Virus record (IMG/VR): IMGVR_UViG_3300028920_000001
Location: 62,001-126,000 of that record
Reading direction: 5' to 3' (one strand)
Length of the DNA: 64,000 bases
A model generated the notes under the pieces. That model ran no database searches, had not been told where the DNA came from, and saw nothing but the letters and a program-made list of their open reading frames with translations. A program made the position numbers and the translations under genes. Below are positions 19,327-61,238 of the stretch, piece after piece; positions within the stretch are counted from its first letter, which is position 1, and each line of letters starts with the position of its first letter.

Positions 19327-20080
19327 AATAATTTCGCCTTGCTTTTACTTGAATGATTTCAAATCCATACCTATGATCATCTAGGATAAGTGCTGATAAT
19401 TTTCCGCCAAACACACATCCAGTATCCAATCCAACGCAAAAGATTGGACAATCATGTCCATCCAAAGCTTCAACTACTGGATAGTCATAAGAACGAGGAT
19501 CATGCCCGTATACGACATGGTTTGGTCCATACCATTTTTGAGTCCAGGAAACGGTATCCGGAGGTTGGTCCAATGAATCTTTCTCAAATGGAACCATTAG
19601 TCCATCTTTATCAACGTATCTGACACGAACCAACTTATCTTTGCGTTGTTCAGATAAAGAACGGCCGGGTTCAAATCCGGCATGCACTACATACCAACTA
19701 TGATATTCATCAATCCAAGCATCGATAGCAGTCCATAATTGCATTTCTCGAATCCACTGAATATCATCAGCAGAAAGGGCATCCCACTTCGCCTTTCGTT
19801 CTGGCGCAGGTGAACGCATTGGGTTTTTCTTTCCGGTAGTGGTTCGTTTCTCTTCATGATCTAACCATCGAAGATATTTTTCTTCATGATTTCCTAATAC
19901 TGAATTAGCCTTAATTTCTCGAGCTAATCCGATACACGCTGCCGGGTCGGGTCCCCGATCGATCAGATCTCCGGTAAAAATTACCCGTTCGTCTGCGGCT
20001 GGACCGGCCAGCTTCAGAAGTTCTTGTAGCTCCTGTATGCAGCCGTGAACATCTCCGATGACAATTGTACGATCAGCCAT
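19301..20080 (-). CDS. metallophosphoesterase (ApaH/PrpE/PnkP-phosphatase-like)
   Basis: GDVHG, GDLIDRG, GNHE, VHAG, VYGH, GLDTGCVFGG. Confidence 0.92.
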   Translation of the reverse strand: MADRTIVIGDVHGCIQELQELLKLAGPAADERVIFTGDLIDRGPDPAACIGLAREIKANSVLGNHEEKYLRWLDHEEKRTTTGKKNPMRSPAPERKAKWDALSADDIQWIREMQLWTAIDAWIDEYHSWYVVHAGFEPGRSLSEQRKDKLVRVRYVDKDGLMVPFEKDSLDQPPDTVSWTQKWYGPNHVVYGHDPRSYDYPVVEALDGHDCPIFCVGLDTGCVFGGKLSALILDDHRYGFEIIQVKARRNYCERGDRSC

Positions 20081-20116
20081 ACTAAGTTCTACTCCGATTT
20101 CAGTGTAATTTACACT

Positions 20117-21466
20117 ATGATTGAACGTTATTCAACCCCTGAATTTATTGAACTTTGGTCCGAAAAAACTAAATACAATATTTGGCTTGAAGTAGAAGCA
20201 GCAGCCACAGCGTCTTTATACGATGATGGATTAATTCCCGAAGGAATAGCTGATAAGATCAAAAATATTAAAATTACTGAAAAAGCAATTAAAGATATTA
20301 AGTCTATTGAAAAAGATGTACGTCATGATGTAATTGCCTTTGTTACGTATCTTGAACAAAAATTAGGTGAAAATGGACGATGGGTTCATCGAGGAATGAC
20401 TTCAAGCGATGTAGTTGATACTGCTTTCGCTCTTCAACTCGTTAAAGCATCAGATCTTCTAATCAAAGATTTGACCAATTTAATTGAAGTTCTCATTTTC
20501 ATGTCAATTCAACATCAGGATACTTTAATGATGGGAAGATCCCATGGAGTAAATGCTGAACCCATTACTTTCGGAGTTATGTTAGCCGGACATTTAGCTG
20601 AATTTAAACGAGCTCGAGCTCGTTTAAATTCAGCTAAAGCAGAAATTTCGGTTGGAAAATTATCAGGTGCTGTTGGGACCTATGTCCATCTGTCTCCCAT
20701 GGCTGAACGTTTAGCCATGGATAGATTGGGTCTACGCCAGGAACCAGTTTCAACTCAGATTGTTCCTCGTGATCGACATGCTTTTTTCTTCATGACTATC
20801 GCCCTGATCGCTACTTCGATTGAACGACTAGCAACTAACATCAGGCATCTCCAGAAAACTGAAACTAAAGAAATAGCAGAGGGTTTTAGTAAAAAACAAA
20901 AGGGTTCCAGTGCTATGCCGCATAAGCGGAATCCGATTTTATGTGAGAATTTATGTGGACTCGCTCGAGTCGTTCGAGGTTATTTAACTCCAGCATTCGA
21001 GGATGTTGTATTATGGCATGAACGTGATATTTCTCATTCATCAGTTGAAAGAATCATAGCGCCTGATGCTACTTCCACCTTGAGTTTCATGCTTCAGCGA
21101 ATGGCTAAGATTATTGGCAATCTTGAAGTTGATGTTCAGCGCATGTCACAAAACGTAAGTAAAAATCAACTCTATGAAAGTGAAAATTTGATGTTAGCTT
21201 TAGTTGATAAAGGAATGTCAAGGAAAGAAGCTTATGAAATTGTGCAGCCATTAGCGTTGAAAGCATATAATGAAGATATTCCTTTTGTACCAATGGTATT
21301 GGGCAATGCTGAAATGTTGAATTATTTAAATTCAGAAGAACTTGCTGCTTGTTTTAACTTAGCCAAGTATACCAGATGGACTGGGGCTATCATCCATAGG
21401 GTCGCCAATGTCAGAGAAACAGATCGAAGTCGGACAAAATTTAAAGAACCCGATCATTTCGGTTAA
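20117..21466 (+). CDS. purB: adenylosuccinate lyase
   Basis: MIERYS start at 20117; RHDVIAFV, HRGMTSSDVVDT, GRSHG..AEP.TFG, signature GSSAMPHKRNP, WHERDISHSSVER. Confidence 0.96.
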   Translation: MIERYSTPEFIELWSEKTKYNIWLEVEAAATASLYDDGLIPEGIADKIKNIKITEKAIKDIKSIEKDVRHDVIAFVTYLEQKLGENGRWVHRGMTSSDVVDTAFALQLVKASDLLIKDLTNLIEVLIFMSIQHQDTLMMGRSHGVNAEPITFGVMLAGHLAEFKRARARLNSAKAEISVGKLSGAVGTYVHLSPMAERLAMDRLGLRQEPVSTQIVPRDRHAFFFMTIALIATSIERLATNIRHLQKTETKEIAEGFSKKQKGSSAMPHKRNPILCENLCGLARVVRGYLTPAFEDVVLWHERDISHSSVERIIAPDATSTLSFMLQRMAKIIGNLEVDVQRMSQNVSKNQLYESENLMLALVDKGMSRKEAYEIVQPLALKAYNEDIPFVPMVLGNAEMLNYLNSEELAACFNLAKYTRWTGAIIHRVANVRETDRSRTKFKEPDHFG

Positions 21467-21689: not shown

Positions 21690-21960
21690 TATGACATACC
21701 ATGGCGTGTTTAAATTCGATTGGTTTCATCTTCAATGATCTTATATTCTCACTTAATATGGACCATCCTGTTTCACTATCATCTATTACTTTATCAATAG
21801 CCTCTTGGGCAGATTGTTTAGTTTGAAATTTTTTAGCATCTTCTGGATTATATACAAAATGAAAGTCCATGAATTTGCCATCAGCTAAAAATATGCCATT
21901 ATTGCTAGAAATTATCCATAAATCTTCATTTGACATTCGAATTAATTTACACCAACTCAA
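21676..21960 (-). CDS. hypothetical protein with C-terminal IMNS tag
   Basis: ends MVCHIMNS*. Confidence 0.7.
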   Translation of the reverse strand: MSWCKLIRMSNEDLWIISSNNGIFLADGKFMDFHFVYNPEDAKKFQTKQSAQEAIDKVIDDSETGWSILSENIRSLKMKPIEFKHAMVCHIMNS

Positions 21961-22276
21961 GCCTTGAACACAGTTTCCTACTCATCCTTCCAGGTTCTAA
22001 AGCAATCGCTGTTAAAGAATAATCAAGATCGGGTTCTCGAAATTCTGAATACCGAATTTTACAAATTTTAGCTTTATTCACTAACTGATTGAGTTCAATT
22101 TCGTTATTGACTCCTAAAACCACAACATAATTTGATTTTTCAAACCATTGTTTCTCAATTTCAGAATGTTCGTATTGAAATTGACGAGCAGCATGAATTG
22201 ATTGAGCAATAATTTTGCCCATTCACAAATCTGTTCTAACGATAATATATAATTTTTCTATCAGAGTATTAGTCAT
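21947..22276 (-). CDS. Pth2-family peptidyl-tRNA hydrolase-like gene with in-frame TGA at codon 18 (22225-22223)
   Basis: MTNTLIEKLYIIVRTDL*MGKIIAQSIHAA...VVLGV..E.EL...FREPDLDYSLTAIALEP; the ORF track captured only the part after the TGA. Confidence 0.8.
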
Positions 22277-22865
22277 CATCTTCATAATCATAAGCCTCGG
22301 CCAGTTCTTTACGCTCTTTAGCGCATTGCTTAAAATGCATAGATACTGCACCAATAATGTCTTCTGGAATGTTAGCTTTTCTCATTTCGTTTTTCCATCC
22401 CGGGTAAGGATCATCCCCACTTATATAACTTTTTTCACCCACCTGGAAACATGGCGGATCACTGTAGATATTACCATGTTCGGTTTCTAAGTATGGCCAA
22501 ACTTCAAGTGGAGAATCATTACAACATCCACAATTATGACTCATATCAAATCGCTTCACTTTATTATTAACAGAAGCAGAACAAAATCTAACCCGTTTCC
22601 AACGATTTACATGTCTGCGTAAATCAGTAAATTGCTGGTATAATGCCTCGAGATCAAGCAGTTCTTTTTGTTTCTCCGCAATTTCTTTTTGTAACGTATC
22701 GATGCAACCTGGAATGCTAGCTCGATATTCTTGTTCTGCTTTAATTCTCTTAAAAGCTTCGTCTTGCTTTTTCCTTTCCTCGTCTCTCTTTAATCGTTCT
22801 TTCTCGTCCATTGGTTCACTTTCATCCATGATGTTGAGGAAATCATCTAAAGCTTTAGCTTTCAT
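22269..22865 (-). CDS. hypothetical protein
   Basis: 198-aa ORF, coiled-coil-like N-terminus. Confidence 0.65.
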   Translation of the reverse strand: MKAKALDDFLNIMDESEPMDEKERLKRDEERKKQDEAFKRIKAEQEYRASIPGCIDTLQKEIAEKQKELLDLEALYQQFTDLRRHVNRWKRVRFCSASVNNKVKRFDMSHNCGCCNDSPLEVWPYLETEHGNIYSDPPCFQVGEKSYISGDDPYPGWKNEMRKANIPEDIIGAVSMHFKQCAKERKELAEAYDYEDDD

Positions 22866-33975: not shown

Positions 33976-34105
33976 TAGTGAAAGGGGCAGGATTCGAACC
34001 CGCGACACTATGCTTTGCAACGATAACCCTAATCCTACGACCCGGGACGGGTAAAAAGGCGGAAAAGGTCTCTAACACATGCTCTACCAACTGAGCTACC
34101 CTTTC
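33976..34105 (-). ncRNA. tRNA-scaffold / Y-module chimera 1 (130 nt)
   Basis: acceptor GAAAGGG/CCCUUUC, canonical D and T arms, anticodon loop replaced by about 61 nt containing UUUUUACCC-GUCCC-GGGUCGUAGGAUUAGGGUUAUCG. Confidence 0.8.
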
Positions 34106-35891: not shown

Positions 35892-37637
35892 TTAAAATTC
35901 TCCTTTGGAGAAAGAAGAAATAAGATCGGGGACTGAAGTATCCATGCCACAAATGTCCAACATTCCAGGATCACGCGGGTCAGCGATGGTAAATTTATCG
36001 CTGGTTAGACCGCAAACAATCAGCCGAGCTTGACGGCCCATTTCCTGCCGATACTTACGCAGGGCCTGAAAGGGCTGCATGCGGCCGGCCCACGTTTCAT
36101 TGTCCGTGTAGACCATGAACGTATCAACTTCGATCTTGTGCTTTAGAGCATACAGCATTGGCTGTGAGCAATCAGTTCCACCGAAGTCTTGACGGGCAGT
36201 GACTTCACAAACCTGATCCAGCCGCATTTTCGGGCTGATATTCAGAACAGTTACGCCACTATCAGGATCGCTGGAAGAATTATTACGACTACCCCAACCC
36301 CAACCGCCACCGGATTCACAAGTGAATCCGATTACCTGCCAATTCTGCTCGAGCTTAGCAGTAACCATGGCCATAGCAGCTGCGGCTTCACGACAAGTCA
36401 AAGTACCACATCCTTGGATGGCAGAGCCCATAGACCCAGAAACATCCAAAGCAAGCAAGTAGTTTTTACCTGTCGGCTGAACTGACTTGAATGCCGTATA
36501 AAATGCAGAATCCATGGCATCAATTACTTGAGTTACTGGGCTCCAGCTGAGTTTACCCTTATCACCATGACCAGATTGATACTGCTTCATAGCAATCAGG
36601 ATCTTCATCGGGTGAAGACGACTCTTACGGATGGCTTCCTCGTTGGCGAACTGTTCAGCTACTTTCTTGGAAGCGGCACTCATCGGCTTGATTAGTCCAC
36701 AAGCCGTCATAACTCCCAAATTACGCGTTAGCGCTGTCATCGGAAGACCACGGTCGAGCAGAGCCTCCCAAATCTCAGGCTCTTTCTTCCACTGAGTCGG
36801 AAGCATCTCATGGCTGAGCCAATATTCATGAATCAACTTGATTACTTCCGCCTTTGATTCGGCCAGCTGGACGGCTTCGAAACCATGGACCAGCTTCGGC
36901 AGAGCTTCCCGATTGAGCTCCTCATAGGAGTCCATACGAGAGTCCTTCTTCTGGCCCTTTCTGAGCACTTCTCGGGCCTCGAGGCTACCATCTTGGGTAA
37001 CCCACCGAAATAGCGCTTGATAAGCTCCGGAATCCATTTCCGGGTCACGACGGACCAATTCAAATGGGTTGGCGTGGCTCAGCTTCAGAAGATCCTTGTG
37101 GGACCATCCATTTCGTTGCTGATACTTGACCAATTGAAGAGCCAACTTATCGGCCGGCTTATCGAGATACCAATTAGCTACAGCATTCCGAAGAGCCCGT
37201 CCCCAACGCCGGAAATTCTCAACATCAGCCGCAAAGTTGAATAGATCAGTACCAATACGGCAAACCTTCGGTAAAGCTTGAAGGGCCGCCTTTCGCACTT
37301 CATTATCCGAATGACCGGCTGCCATGGCGAGACAGAATACTGCCGGATCATTTTTGACCGCACGACCTGCCTGGCTGATTTCAGCGATACGCTTGACTGT
37401 CCGGATACCGTCTTGTTTCAGACACTCCCCAATTGCCTTAGCATTTTCCTTGACGAGCTTTTTCTCGCCAACGTAATAAGTCGAACCCTCAGCACCAAGA
37501 ATCAAAAACCGGTCTAAGCTAGTCCAGCAATCGACCTGCCAAACATAACCGCCTGCACGGTTCTTGACCTGATCCTCACGAGCTTGCTCACTCTGAGAAG
37601 TTACTCGTGGATTGACAATTTCTCCATACCTGGTCAT
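35892..37637 (-). CDS. rsr: Ro60 / TROVE-domain RNA-binding protein with vWA domain (Rsr-like)
   Basis: start MTRYG at 37637 after AGGAG; NRAGGY, LDRFLILGAEG.TYY, KYQQRNGWSHKDLLKLSH, ALTRNLG.MT, RLHP, vWA LALDVSGSM, TDNETW, D..MLD.CG.D. Confidence 0.93.
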   Translation of the reverse strand: MTRYGEIVNPRVTSQSEQAREDQVKNRAGGYVWQVDCWTSLDRFLILGAEGSTYYVGEKKLVKENAKAIGECLKQDGIRTVKRIAEISQAGRAVKNDPAVFCLAMAAGHSDNEVRKAALQALPKVCRIGTDLFNFAADVENFRRWGRALRNAVANWYLDKPADKLALQLVKYQQRNGWSHKDLLKLSHANPFELVRRDPEMDSGAYQALFRWVTQDGSLEAREVLRKGQKKDSRMDSYEELNREALPKLVHGFEAVQLAESKAEVIKLIHEYWLSHEMLPTQWKKEPEIWEALLDRGLPMTALTRNLGVMTACGLIKPMSAASKKVAEQFANEEAIRKSRLHPMKILIAMKQYQSGHGDKGKLSWSPVTQVIDAMDSAFYTAFKSVQPTGKNYLLALDVSGSMGSAIQGCGTLTCREAAAAMAMVTAKLEQNWQVIGFTCESGGGWGWGSRNNSSSDPDSGVTVLNISPKMRLDQVCEVTARQDFGGTDCSQPMLYALKHKIEVDTFMVYTDNETWAGRMQPFQALRKYRQEMGRQARLIVCGLTSDKFTIADPRDPGMLDICGMDTSVPDLISSFSKGEF

Positions 37638-37695
37638 GGTTTTTTCTCCTTGAACGGCCCGAAATTCAGGCAAAAACCCAGATAGCGAAATCTGG
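37638..37695 (-). promoter_or_regulatory. Y-RNA-like module in the Ro60 5' UTR overlapping its Shine-Dalgarno
   Basis: GGUUUUU-GCCUG-AAUUU-CGGGC-CGUUC-AAGGAG-AAAAAACC-AUG. Confidence 0.6.
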
Positions 37696-47780: not shown

Positions 47781-47858
47781 TAGTACGGAGGGCGGGATTC
47801 GAACCCGCACTGTCTAGCATCTCGGGCTAGTGCCTCTGCCTAGTTGGGCTACCTCCGC
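47781..47858 (-). tRNA. tRNA-Leu(GAG), short variable loop
   Basis: CUAGC-CCGAGAU-GCUAG, variable ACAGU. Confidence 0.85.
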
Positions 47859-48397: not shown

Positions 48398-48618
48398 GTT
48401 ATGTCGAAGAAGTCTGGGACTTAGCTTCACAAGTCGCTAATTTCCAAGATGACGAACTGCTTTGGAACACTAGTGACTATGTTTATATTTCAGTTCCTGC
48501 TCGCTTAATACAAAGACTTTGGTGGGCTACACGTTGTGATCTCGATGTTACTAAAACAGGCATTAAACGATCATGGACTTTCCAAGAAGCGATTGTCTAT
48601 GAAGTGATGGGATCGTAG
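48394..48618 (+). CDS. hypothetical protein with C-terminal VMGS tag
   Basis: ends IVYEVMGS*. Confidence 0.65.
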   Translation: MSYVEEVWDLASQVANFQDDELLWNTSDYVYISVPARLIQRLWWATRCDLDVTKTGIKRSWTFQEAIVYEVMGS

Positions 48619-48692
48619 TACCCGTGATAGGATTCGAACCTACACTGTACGGCACCTAAAGCCGTCGCCTCTGCCAGTTGGGCTACACGGGC
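48616..48692 (-). tRNA. tRNA-Leu(UAG), short variable loop
   Basis: ACGGC-UUUAGGU-GCCGU, variable ACAGU. Confidence 0.88.
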
Positions 48693-49013
48693 ATGAAACC
48701 TTCAAAAATCAGAAGAAATTATGGACACATGAAGATTGAAGGCATTCCAATTATAGATCCTGAAATTTTGTCATATATGAATTGCTGTTTTGTTCATCTA
48801 TGTAAAAACAAAACCGTTACGTATTACCAACTGCATGAAAATGGGAAGATTTCATACCAAGCATACTGTGTTGATCATCAATATTATCTTCGAGATGAAC
48901 ACAATAAAATCAGTTATGGTTATTGGATACGAGGCATAACAAGTTCGCGTCAGTATCGAGTTCATAAAGAAAACTGGAATCAAATAATAGTATGTAACAT
49001 AATGAACGTATAG
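48693..49013 (+). CDS. hypothetical protein with variant tag (IMNV)
   Basis: start reassigned to MKPSK outside the tRNA; ends IVCNIMNV*. Confidence 0.6.
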   Translation: MKPSKIRRNYGHMKIEGIPIIDPEILSYMNCCFVHLCKNKTVTYYQLHENGKISYQAYCVDHQYYLRDEHNKISYGYWIRGITSSRQYRVHKENWNQIIVCNIMNV

Positions 49014-49087
49014 TGCTCAGGGAGGGATTCGAACCCACACTGTGTAGTGTTTGAAACTACCGCCTCTGCCAGTTGGGCTACCTGAGC
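49011..49087 (-). tRNA. tRNA-Leu(CAA), short variable loop
   Basis: GUAGU-UUCAAAC-ACUAC, variable ACAGU. Confidence 0.88.
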
Positions 49088-50388: not shown

Positions 50389-50466
50389 TTGTGCGGAGAG
50401 CGGGATTCGAACCCGCACTGGATAGTGTCTGAAACTATTGCCTCTGCCTAGTTGGGCTACCTCCGC
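50389..50466 (-). tRNA. tRNA-Leu(CAG), short variable loop
   Basis: AUAGU-UUCAGAC-ACUAU, variable CCAGU. Confidence 0.88.
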
Positions 50467-50503: not shown

Positions 50504-50633
50504 TAGTGCCCCGAACAGGATTTGAACCTGTAACATCCGGCTTGAATGGCGATAACCCTTATCCTCCGGCCCGAATCGGGCAAAAAATCGGCAAGGATAT
50601 TTTACGGCGCTCTATCCGTTGAGCTATCGGGGC
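50504..50633 (-). ncRNA. tRNA-scaffold / Y-module chimera 2 (130 nt)
   Basis: acceptor GCCCCGA/UCGGGGC, D and T arms canonical; insert AUCCUUGCCGAUUUUUUGCCCG-AUU-CGGGCCGGAGGAUAAGGGUUAUCGCC. Confidence 0.8.
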
Positions 50634-50750: not shown

Positions 50751-50880
50751 ACGGGCAAAAAATCGTGAATGGATGTTGAAGGTTGGATTCGAACCAACGA
50801 CCTCCGGATGTTAGTCCGGCGCTCTAACCACTGAGCTACTCGCTCGATTGATGGGCGATAACCCACACACTCCGGCCCGT
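50751..50880 (-). ncRNA. Y-RNA-like RNA carrying an internal degenerate tRNA cloverleaf (130 nt)
   Basis: 5' ACGGGCCGGAGUGUGUGGGUUAUCGCC ... D-arm, CCGGA-CUAACA-UCCGG (6-nt loop), T-arm ... AUCCAUUCACGAUUUUUUGCCCGU 3'; 2-nt spacers to flanking tRNAs. Confidence 0.75.
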
Positions 50881-50971: not shown

Positions 50972-51049
50972 TAGTAGGGGAGATAGGATTCGAACCTACA
51001 CTGTAGGGTTTTTAAAACCCTCGCCTCTGCCTAGTTGGGCTACTCCCCC
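50972..51049 (-). tRNA. tRNA-Leu(UAA), short variable loop
   Basis: AGGGU-UUUAAAA-ACCCU, variable ACAGU. Confidence 0.88.
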
Positions 51050-61166: not shown

Positions 61167-61238
61167 GTAGGAGAGCGGGTATCGAACCCGCAATGTTTGA
61201 TTCGAGGTCAGATGTTTATCCATTAAACGATAACCTAC
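61167..61238 (-). tRNA. tRNA-Arg(UCG)-like, imperfect acceptor; 5' strand overlaps the Y motif GGUUAUCG
   Basis: D-arm GUUU/AAAC, loop CC-UCG-AA, T-arm GCGGG/CCCGC; preceded by GGGCCGGACGCGUG (61251-61238). Confidence 0.65.

Follow-up and report, generated by a model that had tools for sequence, protein, structure and literature searches.

A Pth2-like gene of a huge phage carrying an in-frame UGA, and its recurring pairing with suppressor tRNA genes

Can a gene that carries a stop codon inside a single protein domain still be a working gene, and if so, how would the ribosome pass the stop? This question is raised by a short gene for a protein resembling peptidyl-tRNA hydrolase 2 (Pth2) in a 64,000-nucleotide (nt) stretch of phage DNA (hereafter the window), which corresponds to positions ~62,001-126,000 of the 426,960-bp IMG/VR contig IMGVR_UViG_3300028920_000001 from a marine-sediment metagenome. 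A reading of the letters alone (the original prediction) had placed an ATG at 22276, an in-frame TGA at 22225-22223 and a continuation in the same frame, and had proposed that the full enzyme needs UGA readthrough, which a UCA tRNA encoded nearby could supply. This layout was confirmed on the minus strand, where the gene consists of three parts:

22226..22276, minus strand: 5' portion of the Pth2-like gene, an ATG and the 16 codons after it (MTNTLIEKLYIIVRTDL), corresponding to beta-strand 1, as judged from a family hidden Markov model (HMM); it is identical in a diverged strain, L006.
22223..22225, minus strand: in-frame TGA, codon 18 of the gene, followed by the letter A, as evidenced by the sequence, by depth and by the same TGA in L006.
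21947..22222, minus strand: 3' portion of the Pth2-like gene, 91 codons and a TAA (21949-21947), carrying the rest of the PTH2 domain, as evidenced by Pfam PTH2 and by the ratio of non-synonymous to synonymous divergence (dN/dS).

Judged by sequence comparison, this gene is probably intact (we put the probability at roughly 0.65): its 109-residue Pth2-fold protein would be completed by decoding of the UGA, likeliest by the phage's own tRNA(UCA), and the locus would represent the UGA version of a module that is widespread among phages.

The 91-residue piece by itself matched Pfam PTH2 (PF01981) with 32.5 bits (cutoff 23) over profile positions 16-102 of 115, where full-length homologues score 31-41 bits, and it aligned to the M. 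jannaschii Pth2 structure starting at residue 16. Alignment across the stop with the family HMM, which was built from 23 full-length homologues, placed the pre-stop peptide at positions 4-15 and the downstream piece at positions 18-106, the pre-stop segment ranking 3rd among the 3077 six-frame segments of the window. Since the leader and the 91-residue piece map to adjacent HMM positions, they are, well beyond chance, adjacent parts of one domain, and the complete PTH2 domain including its N-terminal strand 1 is reached only across the TGA. The claim that the pre-stop peptide forms the first beta-strand was thus borne out, as it was in a model computed with AlphaFold2 for the closest full-length homologue (P0003, 61% identical; predicted local distance difference test score (pLDDT) of 94), which has strands at residues 4-9, 46-51, 71-76 and 82-88; given the strand at residues 4-9, the leader corresponds to one of four strands of the sheet. 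The top Foldseek matches of this homologue model in the PDB were 1q7s, 2zv3, 1wn2, 3erj and 1xty, with template modelling (TM) scores of 0.78-0.82, so that the fold evidence, taken from the homologue, points to a resemblance to human Bit1/PTRH2 and archaeal Pth2 structures. The leader carries the Arg and Asp (R10, D12) of the motif (I/V)-(T/V)-R-x-D-L, two residues that precede the stop and are shared by 90% or more of the family, and all invariant subfamily residues sit in the 91-codon 3' part. The column of the TGA is a loop position and among the most variable of the family (K, D, E, H, P, S, F, R or A), and the Met that follows fits the DL-x-M-G-K motif of cellular Pth2.

The subfamily corresponds to PHROG 1866, of unassigned function, and scored 25-34 bits, with 25.4 and 22 as single values, against the NCBIfam Pth2 equivalogs NF003314 / TIGR00283, compared with cutoffs of 126 and 82. 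By these scores the window protein is best placed in a divergent Pth2 subfamily and not as an orthologue of cellular Pth2. It retains the G-K...AQ..HA motif and E-P-D...T-A-I-A, while G-Y-Q (P-G-Y-Q) replaces G-K in most subfamily members. Gene callers split or shorten the Pth2-like gene in many genomes, and many database entries begin at an internal Met or Val.

For comparison, 64 IMG/VR loci from a family-profile scan and four huge-phage loci were grouped into 55 clusters at 90% identity, which divide by the in-frame stop as follows:

In-frame TAG: 24 clusters; tRNA-CUA downstream in 18, and 3 of the other 6 have less than 300 nt of downstream sequence.
In-frame TGA (the window phage, and L066 at codon 59): 2 clusters; tRNA-UCA downstream in both.
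In-frame TAA (codon 5): 1 cluster; no tRNA in reach.
No in-frame stop: 28 clusters; CUA in 6, UUA in 3 and unusual loops in 16.

Among these loci no stop was paired with a mismatched neighbouring anticodon (TAG/CUA in 18, TGA/UCA in 2). The first downstream tRNA, present in 47 clusters, was a suppressor in 29, an odd-looped tRNA of UCA/CUA type in 16 and an ordinary tRNA in 2, and it lay on the strand of the gene in all 47; of the other tRNAs in the same loci, 95 of 115 were ordinary. In the TAG group the suppressor tRNAs are on the same strand, downstream in all but one, with no intervening tRNA. The four other huge phages all have homologues with an in-frame TAG, and two of them have a tRNA-CUA 0.8-2.2 kb downstream. 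Both the linkage of gene and tRNA and the match of codon and anticodon lend comparative support to the proposed readthrough by the phage UCA tRNA.

An early TAG occurs at codons 3-6 in 23 clusters, always just before (I/V)-K-x-G-D-K-L-Y, and a GGAG Shine-Dalgarno sequence lies 6-9 nt upstream of the ATG that precedes it. Next to the early TAG comes ATT, ATC, GTT, AAC or AGC, with no start codon further on, and a start codon is likewise missing after the TGA at codon 59 of L066; the stop therefore has to be decoded in these relatives. Within the body of the Pth2-like gene TAG makes up 1 of 157 Gln-type codons (0.6%), compared with 7.6% in 333 neighbouring genes, and this near absence, together with the fixed position of the early TAG, indicates that the latter is not an ordinary synonymous codon.

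Early stops were also seen elsewhere in this set. In L046 (5980-6000; IMGVR_UViG_3300035208_009193, 675 kb) the gene opens ATG-AAA-GAA-ACA-TAA-ATT, with an early in-frame TAA and no start codon after it; TAA terminates 22 of 24 genes of this locus, and no tRNA lies within 6 kb. Among the neighbouring gene models of the TAG-type loci (L016-L079), 27 of 333 contain a TAG among codons 1-6, which is roughly fivefold the density of TAG overall, an excess that may partly be an artefact of choosing the longest open reading frame (ORF) but could also reflect a wider use of early-stop gating.

The unusual tRNAs of 16 clusters have eight-membered anticodon loops (AUUUCAAC or ACUUCAAG) containing UCA, for which ARAGORN gives no anticodon type, its calls being ???(ttca), ???(tc) or Glu(ttc). 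Such tRNAs, found in the GC-rich, standard-code loci L031, L032, L037, L038, L040, L041, L044, L047, L051, L053, L054, L057 and L061, lie 0.4-1.6 kb downstream of the Pth2-like gene, often as tandem pairs, and could be UGA suppressors or quadruplet decoders. A comparable arrangement is seen in two mycobacteriophages: in Bxz1, a 'tRNA-like product', read as CUA by ARAGORN, comes after the Pth2-like gene gp154, and in Phabba the gene annotated as peptidyl-tRNA hydrolase has a 'tRNA-undetermined' gene 7 nt behind it, after which comes a tRNA with a nine-membered loop.

In the window the corresponding RNA genes, including a transfer-messenger RNA (tmRNA), are:

18541..18615, minus strand: opal-suppressor tRNA, anticodon UCA, 75 nt, with 55 bits against the Rfam tRNA model and a canonical cloverleaf.
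13832..14185, minus strand: tmRNA with the tag ANDNASLAIAA, further downstream, from the ARAGORN/Rfam scans.

The tRNA(UCA), with the loop UUUCAAG, a U31-U39 mismatch and the discriminator G73, is the first tRNA downstream of the Pth2-like gene (+3335 nt, 3.3 kb) and lies on the same strand; the order of Pth2-like gene, tRNA-UCA and tmRNA is common to the window phage and L066. By the identity rules known from bacteria, its G73, C35 and A36 fit Trp, and the tRNA(UCA) is probably charged with Trp by the host enzyme; UGA suppressors in E. coli are tryptophanylated. The window holds 24 tRNA genes by ARAGORN and a few more by Rfam, in addition to the tmRNA. With the other tRNAs of the window the tRNA(UCA) shares identities at 39-49 of 75 positions, ruling out an origin from one of them. 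An adenylosuccinate lyase gene (Lyase_1 + ADSL_C; window 20045-21466, plus strand) lies between the Pth2-like gene and the tRNA(UCA).

Combined with the comparative analysis, these features suggest how the module may work. The ribosome would decode the UGA at codon 18, most likely with the phage tRNA(UCA) encoded 3.3 kb downstream, and since the full protein would depend on this decoding, the Pth2-like enzyme would be made in step with suppressor activity. We infer that the tRNA(UCA) is expressed, charged and able to read this UGA, and that the protein would hydrolyse peptidyl-tRNA (or aminoacyl-tRNA) arising as a by-product of suppression, for instance from drop-off or from non-stop stalls after readthrough, an idea that the nearby tmRNA fits. 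In its simplest reading, the enzyme would clear readthrough-derived peptidyl-tRNA and be made in proportion to suppression. In general form, the module would pair a divergent Pth2-like gene with one or two tRNA genes downstream, of suppressor or suppressor-like kind, and in TAG-decoding phages it would include an obligatory TAG at codons 3-6.

Several points weigh against the decoding of this UGA by the phage tRNA or against the role proposed for the enzyme. Five genes, one of them on the other strand, separate the Pth2-like gene from the tRNA(UCA), the largest spacing in the set, and an ATG (22222) directly follows the TGA. The TAG found at the N-terminal site in 23 of 23 clusters is a descriptive count, as the group was defined by this feature. 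The canonical Pth2 lysine is absent in most subfamily members, leaving the substrate uncertain. Anti-Shine-Dalgarno pairing at the gene starts of this phage, examined as a guide to the choice between the two ATGs, was no stronger than at random positions. The depth evidence comes from assembled Logan contigs, which drop rare variants, and not from raw reads; the second strain, L006, was drawn from the same sample as the window contig, and a metagenome scan for close relatives returned the same two contigs only and no third one. Furthermore, the genome survey covered ~102 kb (contig 62-163.6 kb), 24% of the 427-kb genome.

The adjacent ATG raises an alternative that we regard as unlikely, in which the UGA acts as a stop, frees a 17-residue peptide and is followed by a restart at the adjacent AUG to give a 91-residue protein that would work either without strand 1 or together with the free peptide. 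The 91-residue ORF is indeed what gene callers and two assemblies annotate, and stop-start junctions that overlap or abut occur commonly in the genome. However, the Met concerned is the family residue of the DL-x-M-G-K motif and not a new start, truncation would cost the protein two near-invariant residues and a strand of its four-stranded sheet, and neither L066 nor any early-TAG gene offers a start codon after its stop, all of which argues against a restart.

A further alternative, to which we would likewise assign little weight, is that TGA is widely used for Trp in late genes elsewhere in the genome, as in code 4, so that the TGA of the Pth2-like gene would be one of many and without a special role. 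The phage does have a suppressor tRNA(UCA), and phage recoding is known to spare early regions. Under code 11, however, the window gave 130 gene models with a coverage of 88%, of which 43 terminate in TGA, and in three further 10-kb stretches reaching to contig position 163.6 kb the code-11 density was 0.82-0.91, compared with 0.77-0.80 when TGA was read as sense, with TGA terminating 8-12 of ~20 genes in each. Over the whole 102 kb the densities were 0.82-0.91 and 0.77-0.83, respectively, and TGA ends 33-55% of the genes, showing that TGA is an ordinary, frequent terminator in the surveyed 24% of the genome, whereas in described TGA-recoded phages the reassigned stop is depleted first. Even in TAG-recoded phages the TAG of this gene keeps to a single site, with hardly any in the gene body (the 1 of 157 codons given above). 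A search of the 102 kb for other TGA-bridged genes found none that was convincing, the Pth2-like gene being the only interrupted one: of the candidates in L015 and L081, the best one, in L015, was dropped because its upstream partner is a complete Apyc1 domain, and the others because they end with the usual gene-end motif of this genome, described below.

A recent nonsense mutation, which would make the gene a pseudogene, or a sequencing error had been named as the alternative in the original prediction, and an assembly error was considered with them; as the sole stop-interrupted gene in 102 kb of otherwise intact genes, it might invite this view. The possibility is very slight, and effectively refuted by three lines of evidence. 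Firstly, contig depth is ~800, and the contig piece spanning the TGA has a word depth of ~885 with no other letters and no TGA variant listed at the 5% threshold, and a second, independent assembly, a 428,825-bp ENA contig, agrees with that of IMG/VR. Secondly, as the original prediction had called for in related phages, the same TGA is present in the diverged strain L006, a 2,112-bp contig from the same sample, whose leader plus TGA (54 nt; window 22223-22276 aligned with L006 624-677) is 100% identical. Thirdly, the 91 downstream codons differ between the two by 11 synonymous and 8 non-synonymous changes (synonymous divergence (dS) 0.23, dN/dS 0.17), showing purifying selection (binomial p = 4e-4 versus neutrality). 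Over the 54 nt of leader and TGA no letter differs, which is mildly unusual (p ~0.04) against a flanking coding dS of ~0.23-0.26 and may point to a constraint at the RNA level. The idea that the UGA encodes selenocysteine, suggested by the ARAGORN label 'SeC' on the tRNA(UCA), can be practically set aside, since this label stems from the anticodon alone, the 75-nt tRNA combines standard 7/5 arm geometry with a short variable loop and has no size or arm features of tRNA-Sec, the fold 3' of the UGA shows no significant hairpin (z = -1.5) and the TGA position is a variable surface loop.

Returning to the decoding of the UGA by the tRNA(UCA), the recurring gene-tRNA pairing in dozens of phages is a sequence pattern pointing to an undescribed control module for stop-codon suppression. 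It is conceivable, although we hold this doubtful, that the two partners form a self-setting loop, in which the suppressor tRNA permits synthesis of the enzyme and the enzyme, acting on the acylated or peptidyl form of the suppressor or on readthrough products, sets the level of suppression. Such a loop, if true, would be a general and previously unrecognised controller of stop-codon suppression. It would explain how phages whose genes end in that very stop (here a third or more in TGA) can afford a suppressor, as well as why the pair is kept together from the mycobacteriophages Bxz1 and Phabba to phages of 400-700 kb. Phage suppressor tRNAs and stop-codon recoding are already known, and they raise the questions of how suppression is dosed and for what reason standard-code phages have suppressors; a conserved partner gene whose translation depends on the suppressor would provide a handle on both, and the gene-tRNA pair could mark suppressor use. 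The expanded-anticodon-loop tRNAs, which standard tools leave untyped, occupy the same position beside the gene, and the module is accessible in the cultured phages Bxz1 and Phabba.

How does this locus compare with known systems? The feedback switch inferred in the original prediction by analogy with release factor 2 (RF2, prfB) would have its parallel in a termination-related gene with an in-frame UGA, whose own synthesis reports on UGA reading. In RF2, however, the ribosome shifts by +1 at CUU-UGA-C, aided by a Shine-Dalgarno sequence upstream, whereas here the context is UUG-UGA-AUG, reading continues in frame 0, no such signal is present and what would be needed is a tRNA, not a shift. 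The archaeal and eukaryotic Pth2 enzymes (PTRH2/Bit1; 1q7s, 2zv3 and 1xty) share with the phage protein the fold, the PTH2 match and the G-K...AQ..HA motif, but the latter belongs with the divergent phage proteins of PHROG 1866, far below the equivalog cutoffs and with P-G-Y-Q in most members. In phage Q-beta, low-level UGA readthrough by host tRNA-Trp at the end of the complete coat gene gives the A1 protein, and both products are used. As in that case, UGA decoding would yield a longer functional protein, but the stop here lies inside a single domain and the phage supplies its own suppressor. Minigenes of two to three codons are classic sources of peptidyl-tRNA drop-off that is cleared by Pth, and in lambda bar the whole ORF consists of the minigene, which is toxic at low Pth. 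The ATG-(1-4 codons)-TAG openings of the TAG-type relatives look similar to such minigenes, but here the body of a Pth-like gene follows the stop.

The closest precedent is stop-codon recoding by phage-encoded suppressor tRNAs, described by Borges et al. (bioRxiv 10.1101/2021.08.26.457843) and Peters et al. (PMC9523058), where standard-code phages already carrying a TGA suppressor are also reported. In both settings a phage suppressor tRNA decodes, or would decode, in-frame stops, such that the genes concerned are made only once the tRNA is present. In the recoding phages, however, many genes are recoded, mainly structural and lysis genes, terminators are depleted of the reassigned stop and the 'code-change module' combines a tRNA and an aminoacyl-tRNA synthetase with a release factor, whereas here one gene is interrupted in 102 kb, TGA is a common terminator and a Pth2-like gene is linked to the suppressor tRNA. 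Within open-access text, the recoding literature consulted contained no description of a Pth2-like gene linked to a suppressor tRNA, and no open-access paper was found that joins PTH2, suppressor tRNA and phage. No close relative of the contig was found by megablast against 50,697 phage records.

Upstream of the Pth2-like gene lies one further gene of interest:

22269..22865, minus strand: gene for a protein of 198 residues, function unassigned (no family match), whose stop overlaps the Pth2-like start.

The start ATG of the Pth2-like gene (22276-22274) overlaps the TAA of this gene (22271-22269) via ATGACTAA, and the two may be translationally coupled; the upstream gene has a dN/dS of 0.04 versus strain L006.

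Several other features of the genome were observed. The gene-end motif mentioned above, ATG-GA(A/G)-TC(N)-stop or ATG-AAT-TC(N)-stop, encoding ...(I/V)-M-(E/N)-S*, closes 26 window genes (e.g. 12358/12367, 31532/31541, 46256/46265, 59437/59454 and ~20 more, on both strands), often with the ATG of the next gene inside TCATGA. Where it is palindromic (TTATGAATTCATAA and ATGGAGTCATGACTCCAT), two convergent genes can have their last codons in common, and the motif might serve as a C-terminal tag, for recombination or as a coupling cassette. A homing-endonuclease query aimed at paralogues elsewhere in the genome returned a self-match only.

Five tRNAs of 75-76 nt with Leu anticodons (47783-47858, 48618-48692, 49013-49087, 50391-50466 and 50974-51049, all on the minus strand) are without the long variable arm that defines bacterial tRNA-Leu. 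Four tRNAs missed by ARAGORN were found by Rfam only, at 33979-34105 and 50507-50633 (both minus strand), 50777-50845 and 61167-61237. Two of the Rfam-only tRNAs carry an insertion of ~55-60 nt in the anticodon region, which could be a small intron or ribozyme; the insertions share a GCCCG-loop-CGGGC hairpin followed by GGAT(T/A)AGGGTTATCG, and GG(G)TTATCG is also seen next to other tRNAs. The one at 50507 carries UUCAAG immediately ahead of its 3' stem half and might become a second UCA-type tRNA after processing.

A Ro60-like RNA-binding protein is encoded at window 35892-37673 on the minus strand, 41-44% identical to those of actinobacteriophages. Past the right edge of the window, L014 / L011 (contig ~126-134 kb) hold a full-length EF-Tu (392 residues), RtcB, an RNA ligase and 13 more tRNAs, and at L015 5124-5912 (contig ~148 kb) an anti-Pycsar Apyc1-like hydrolase is encoded, with 115.8 bits against a cutoff of 50.
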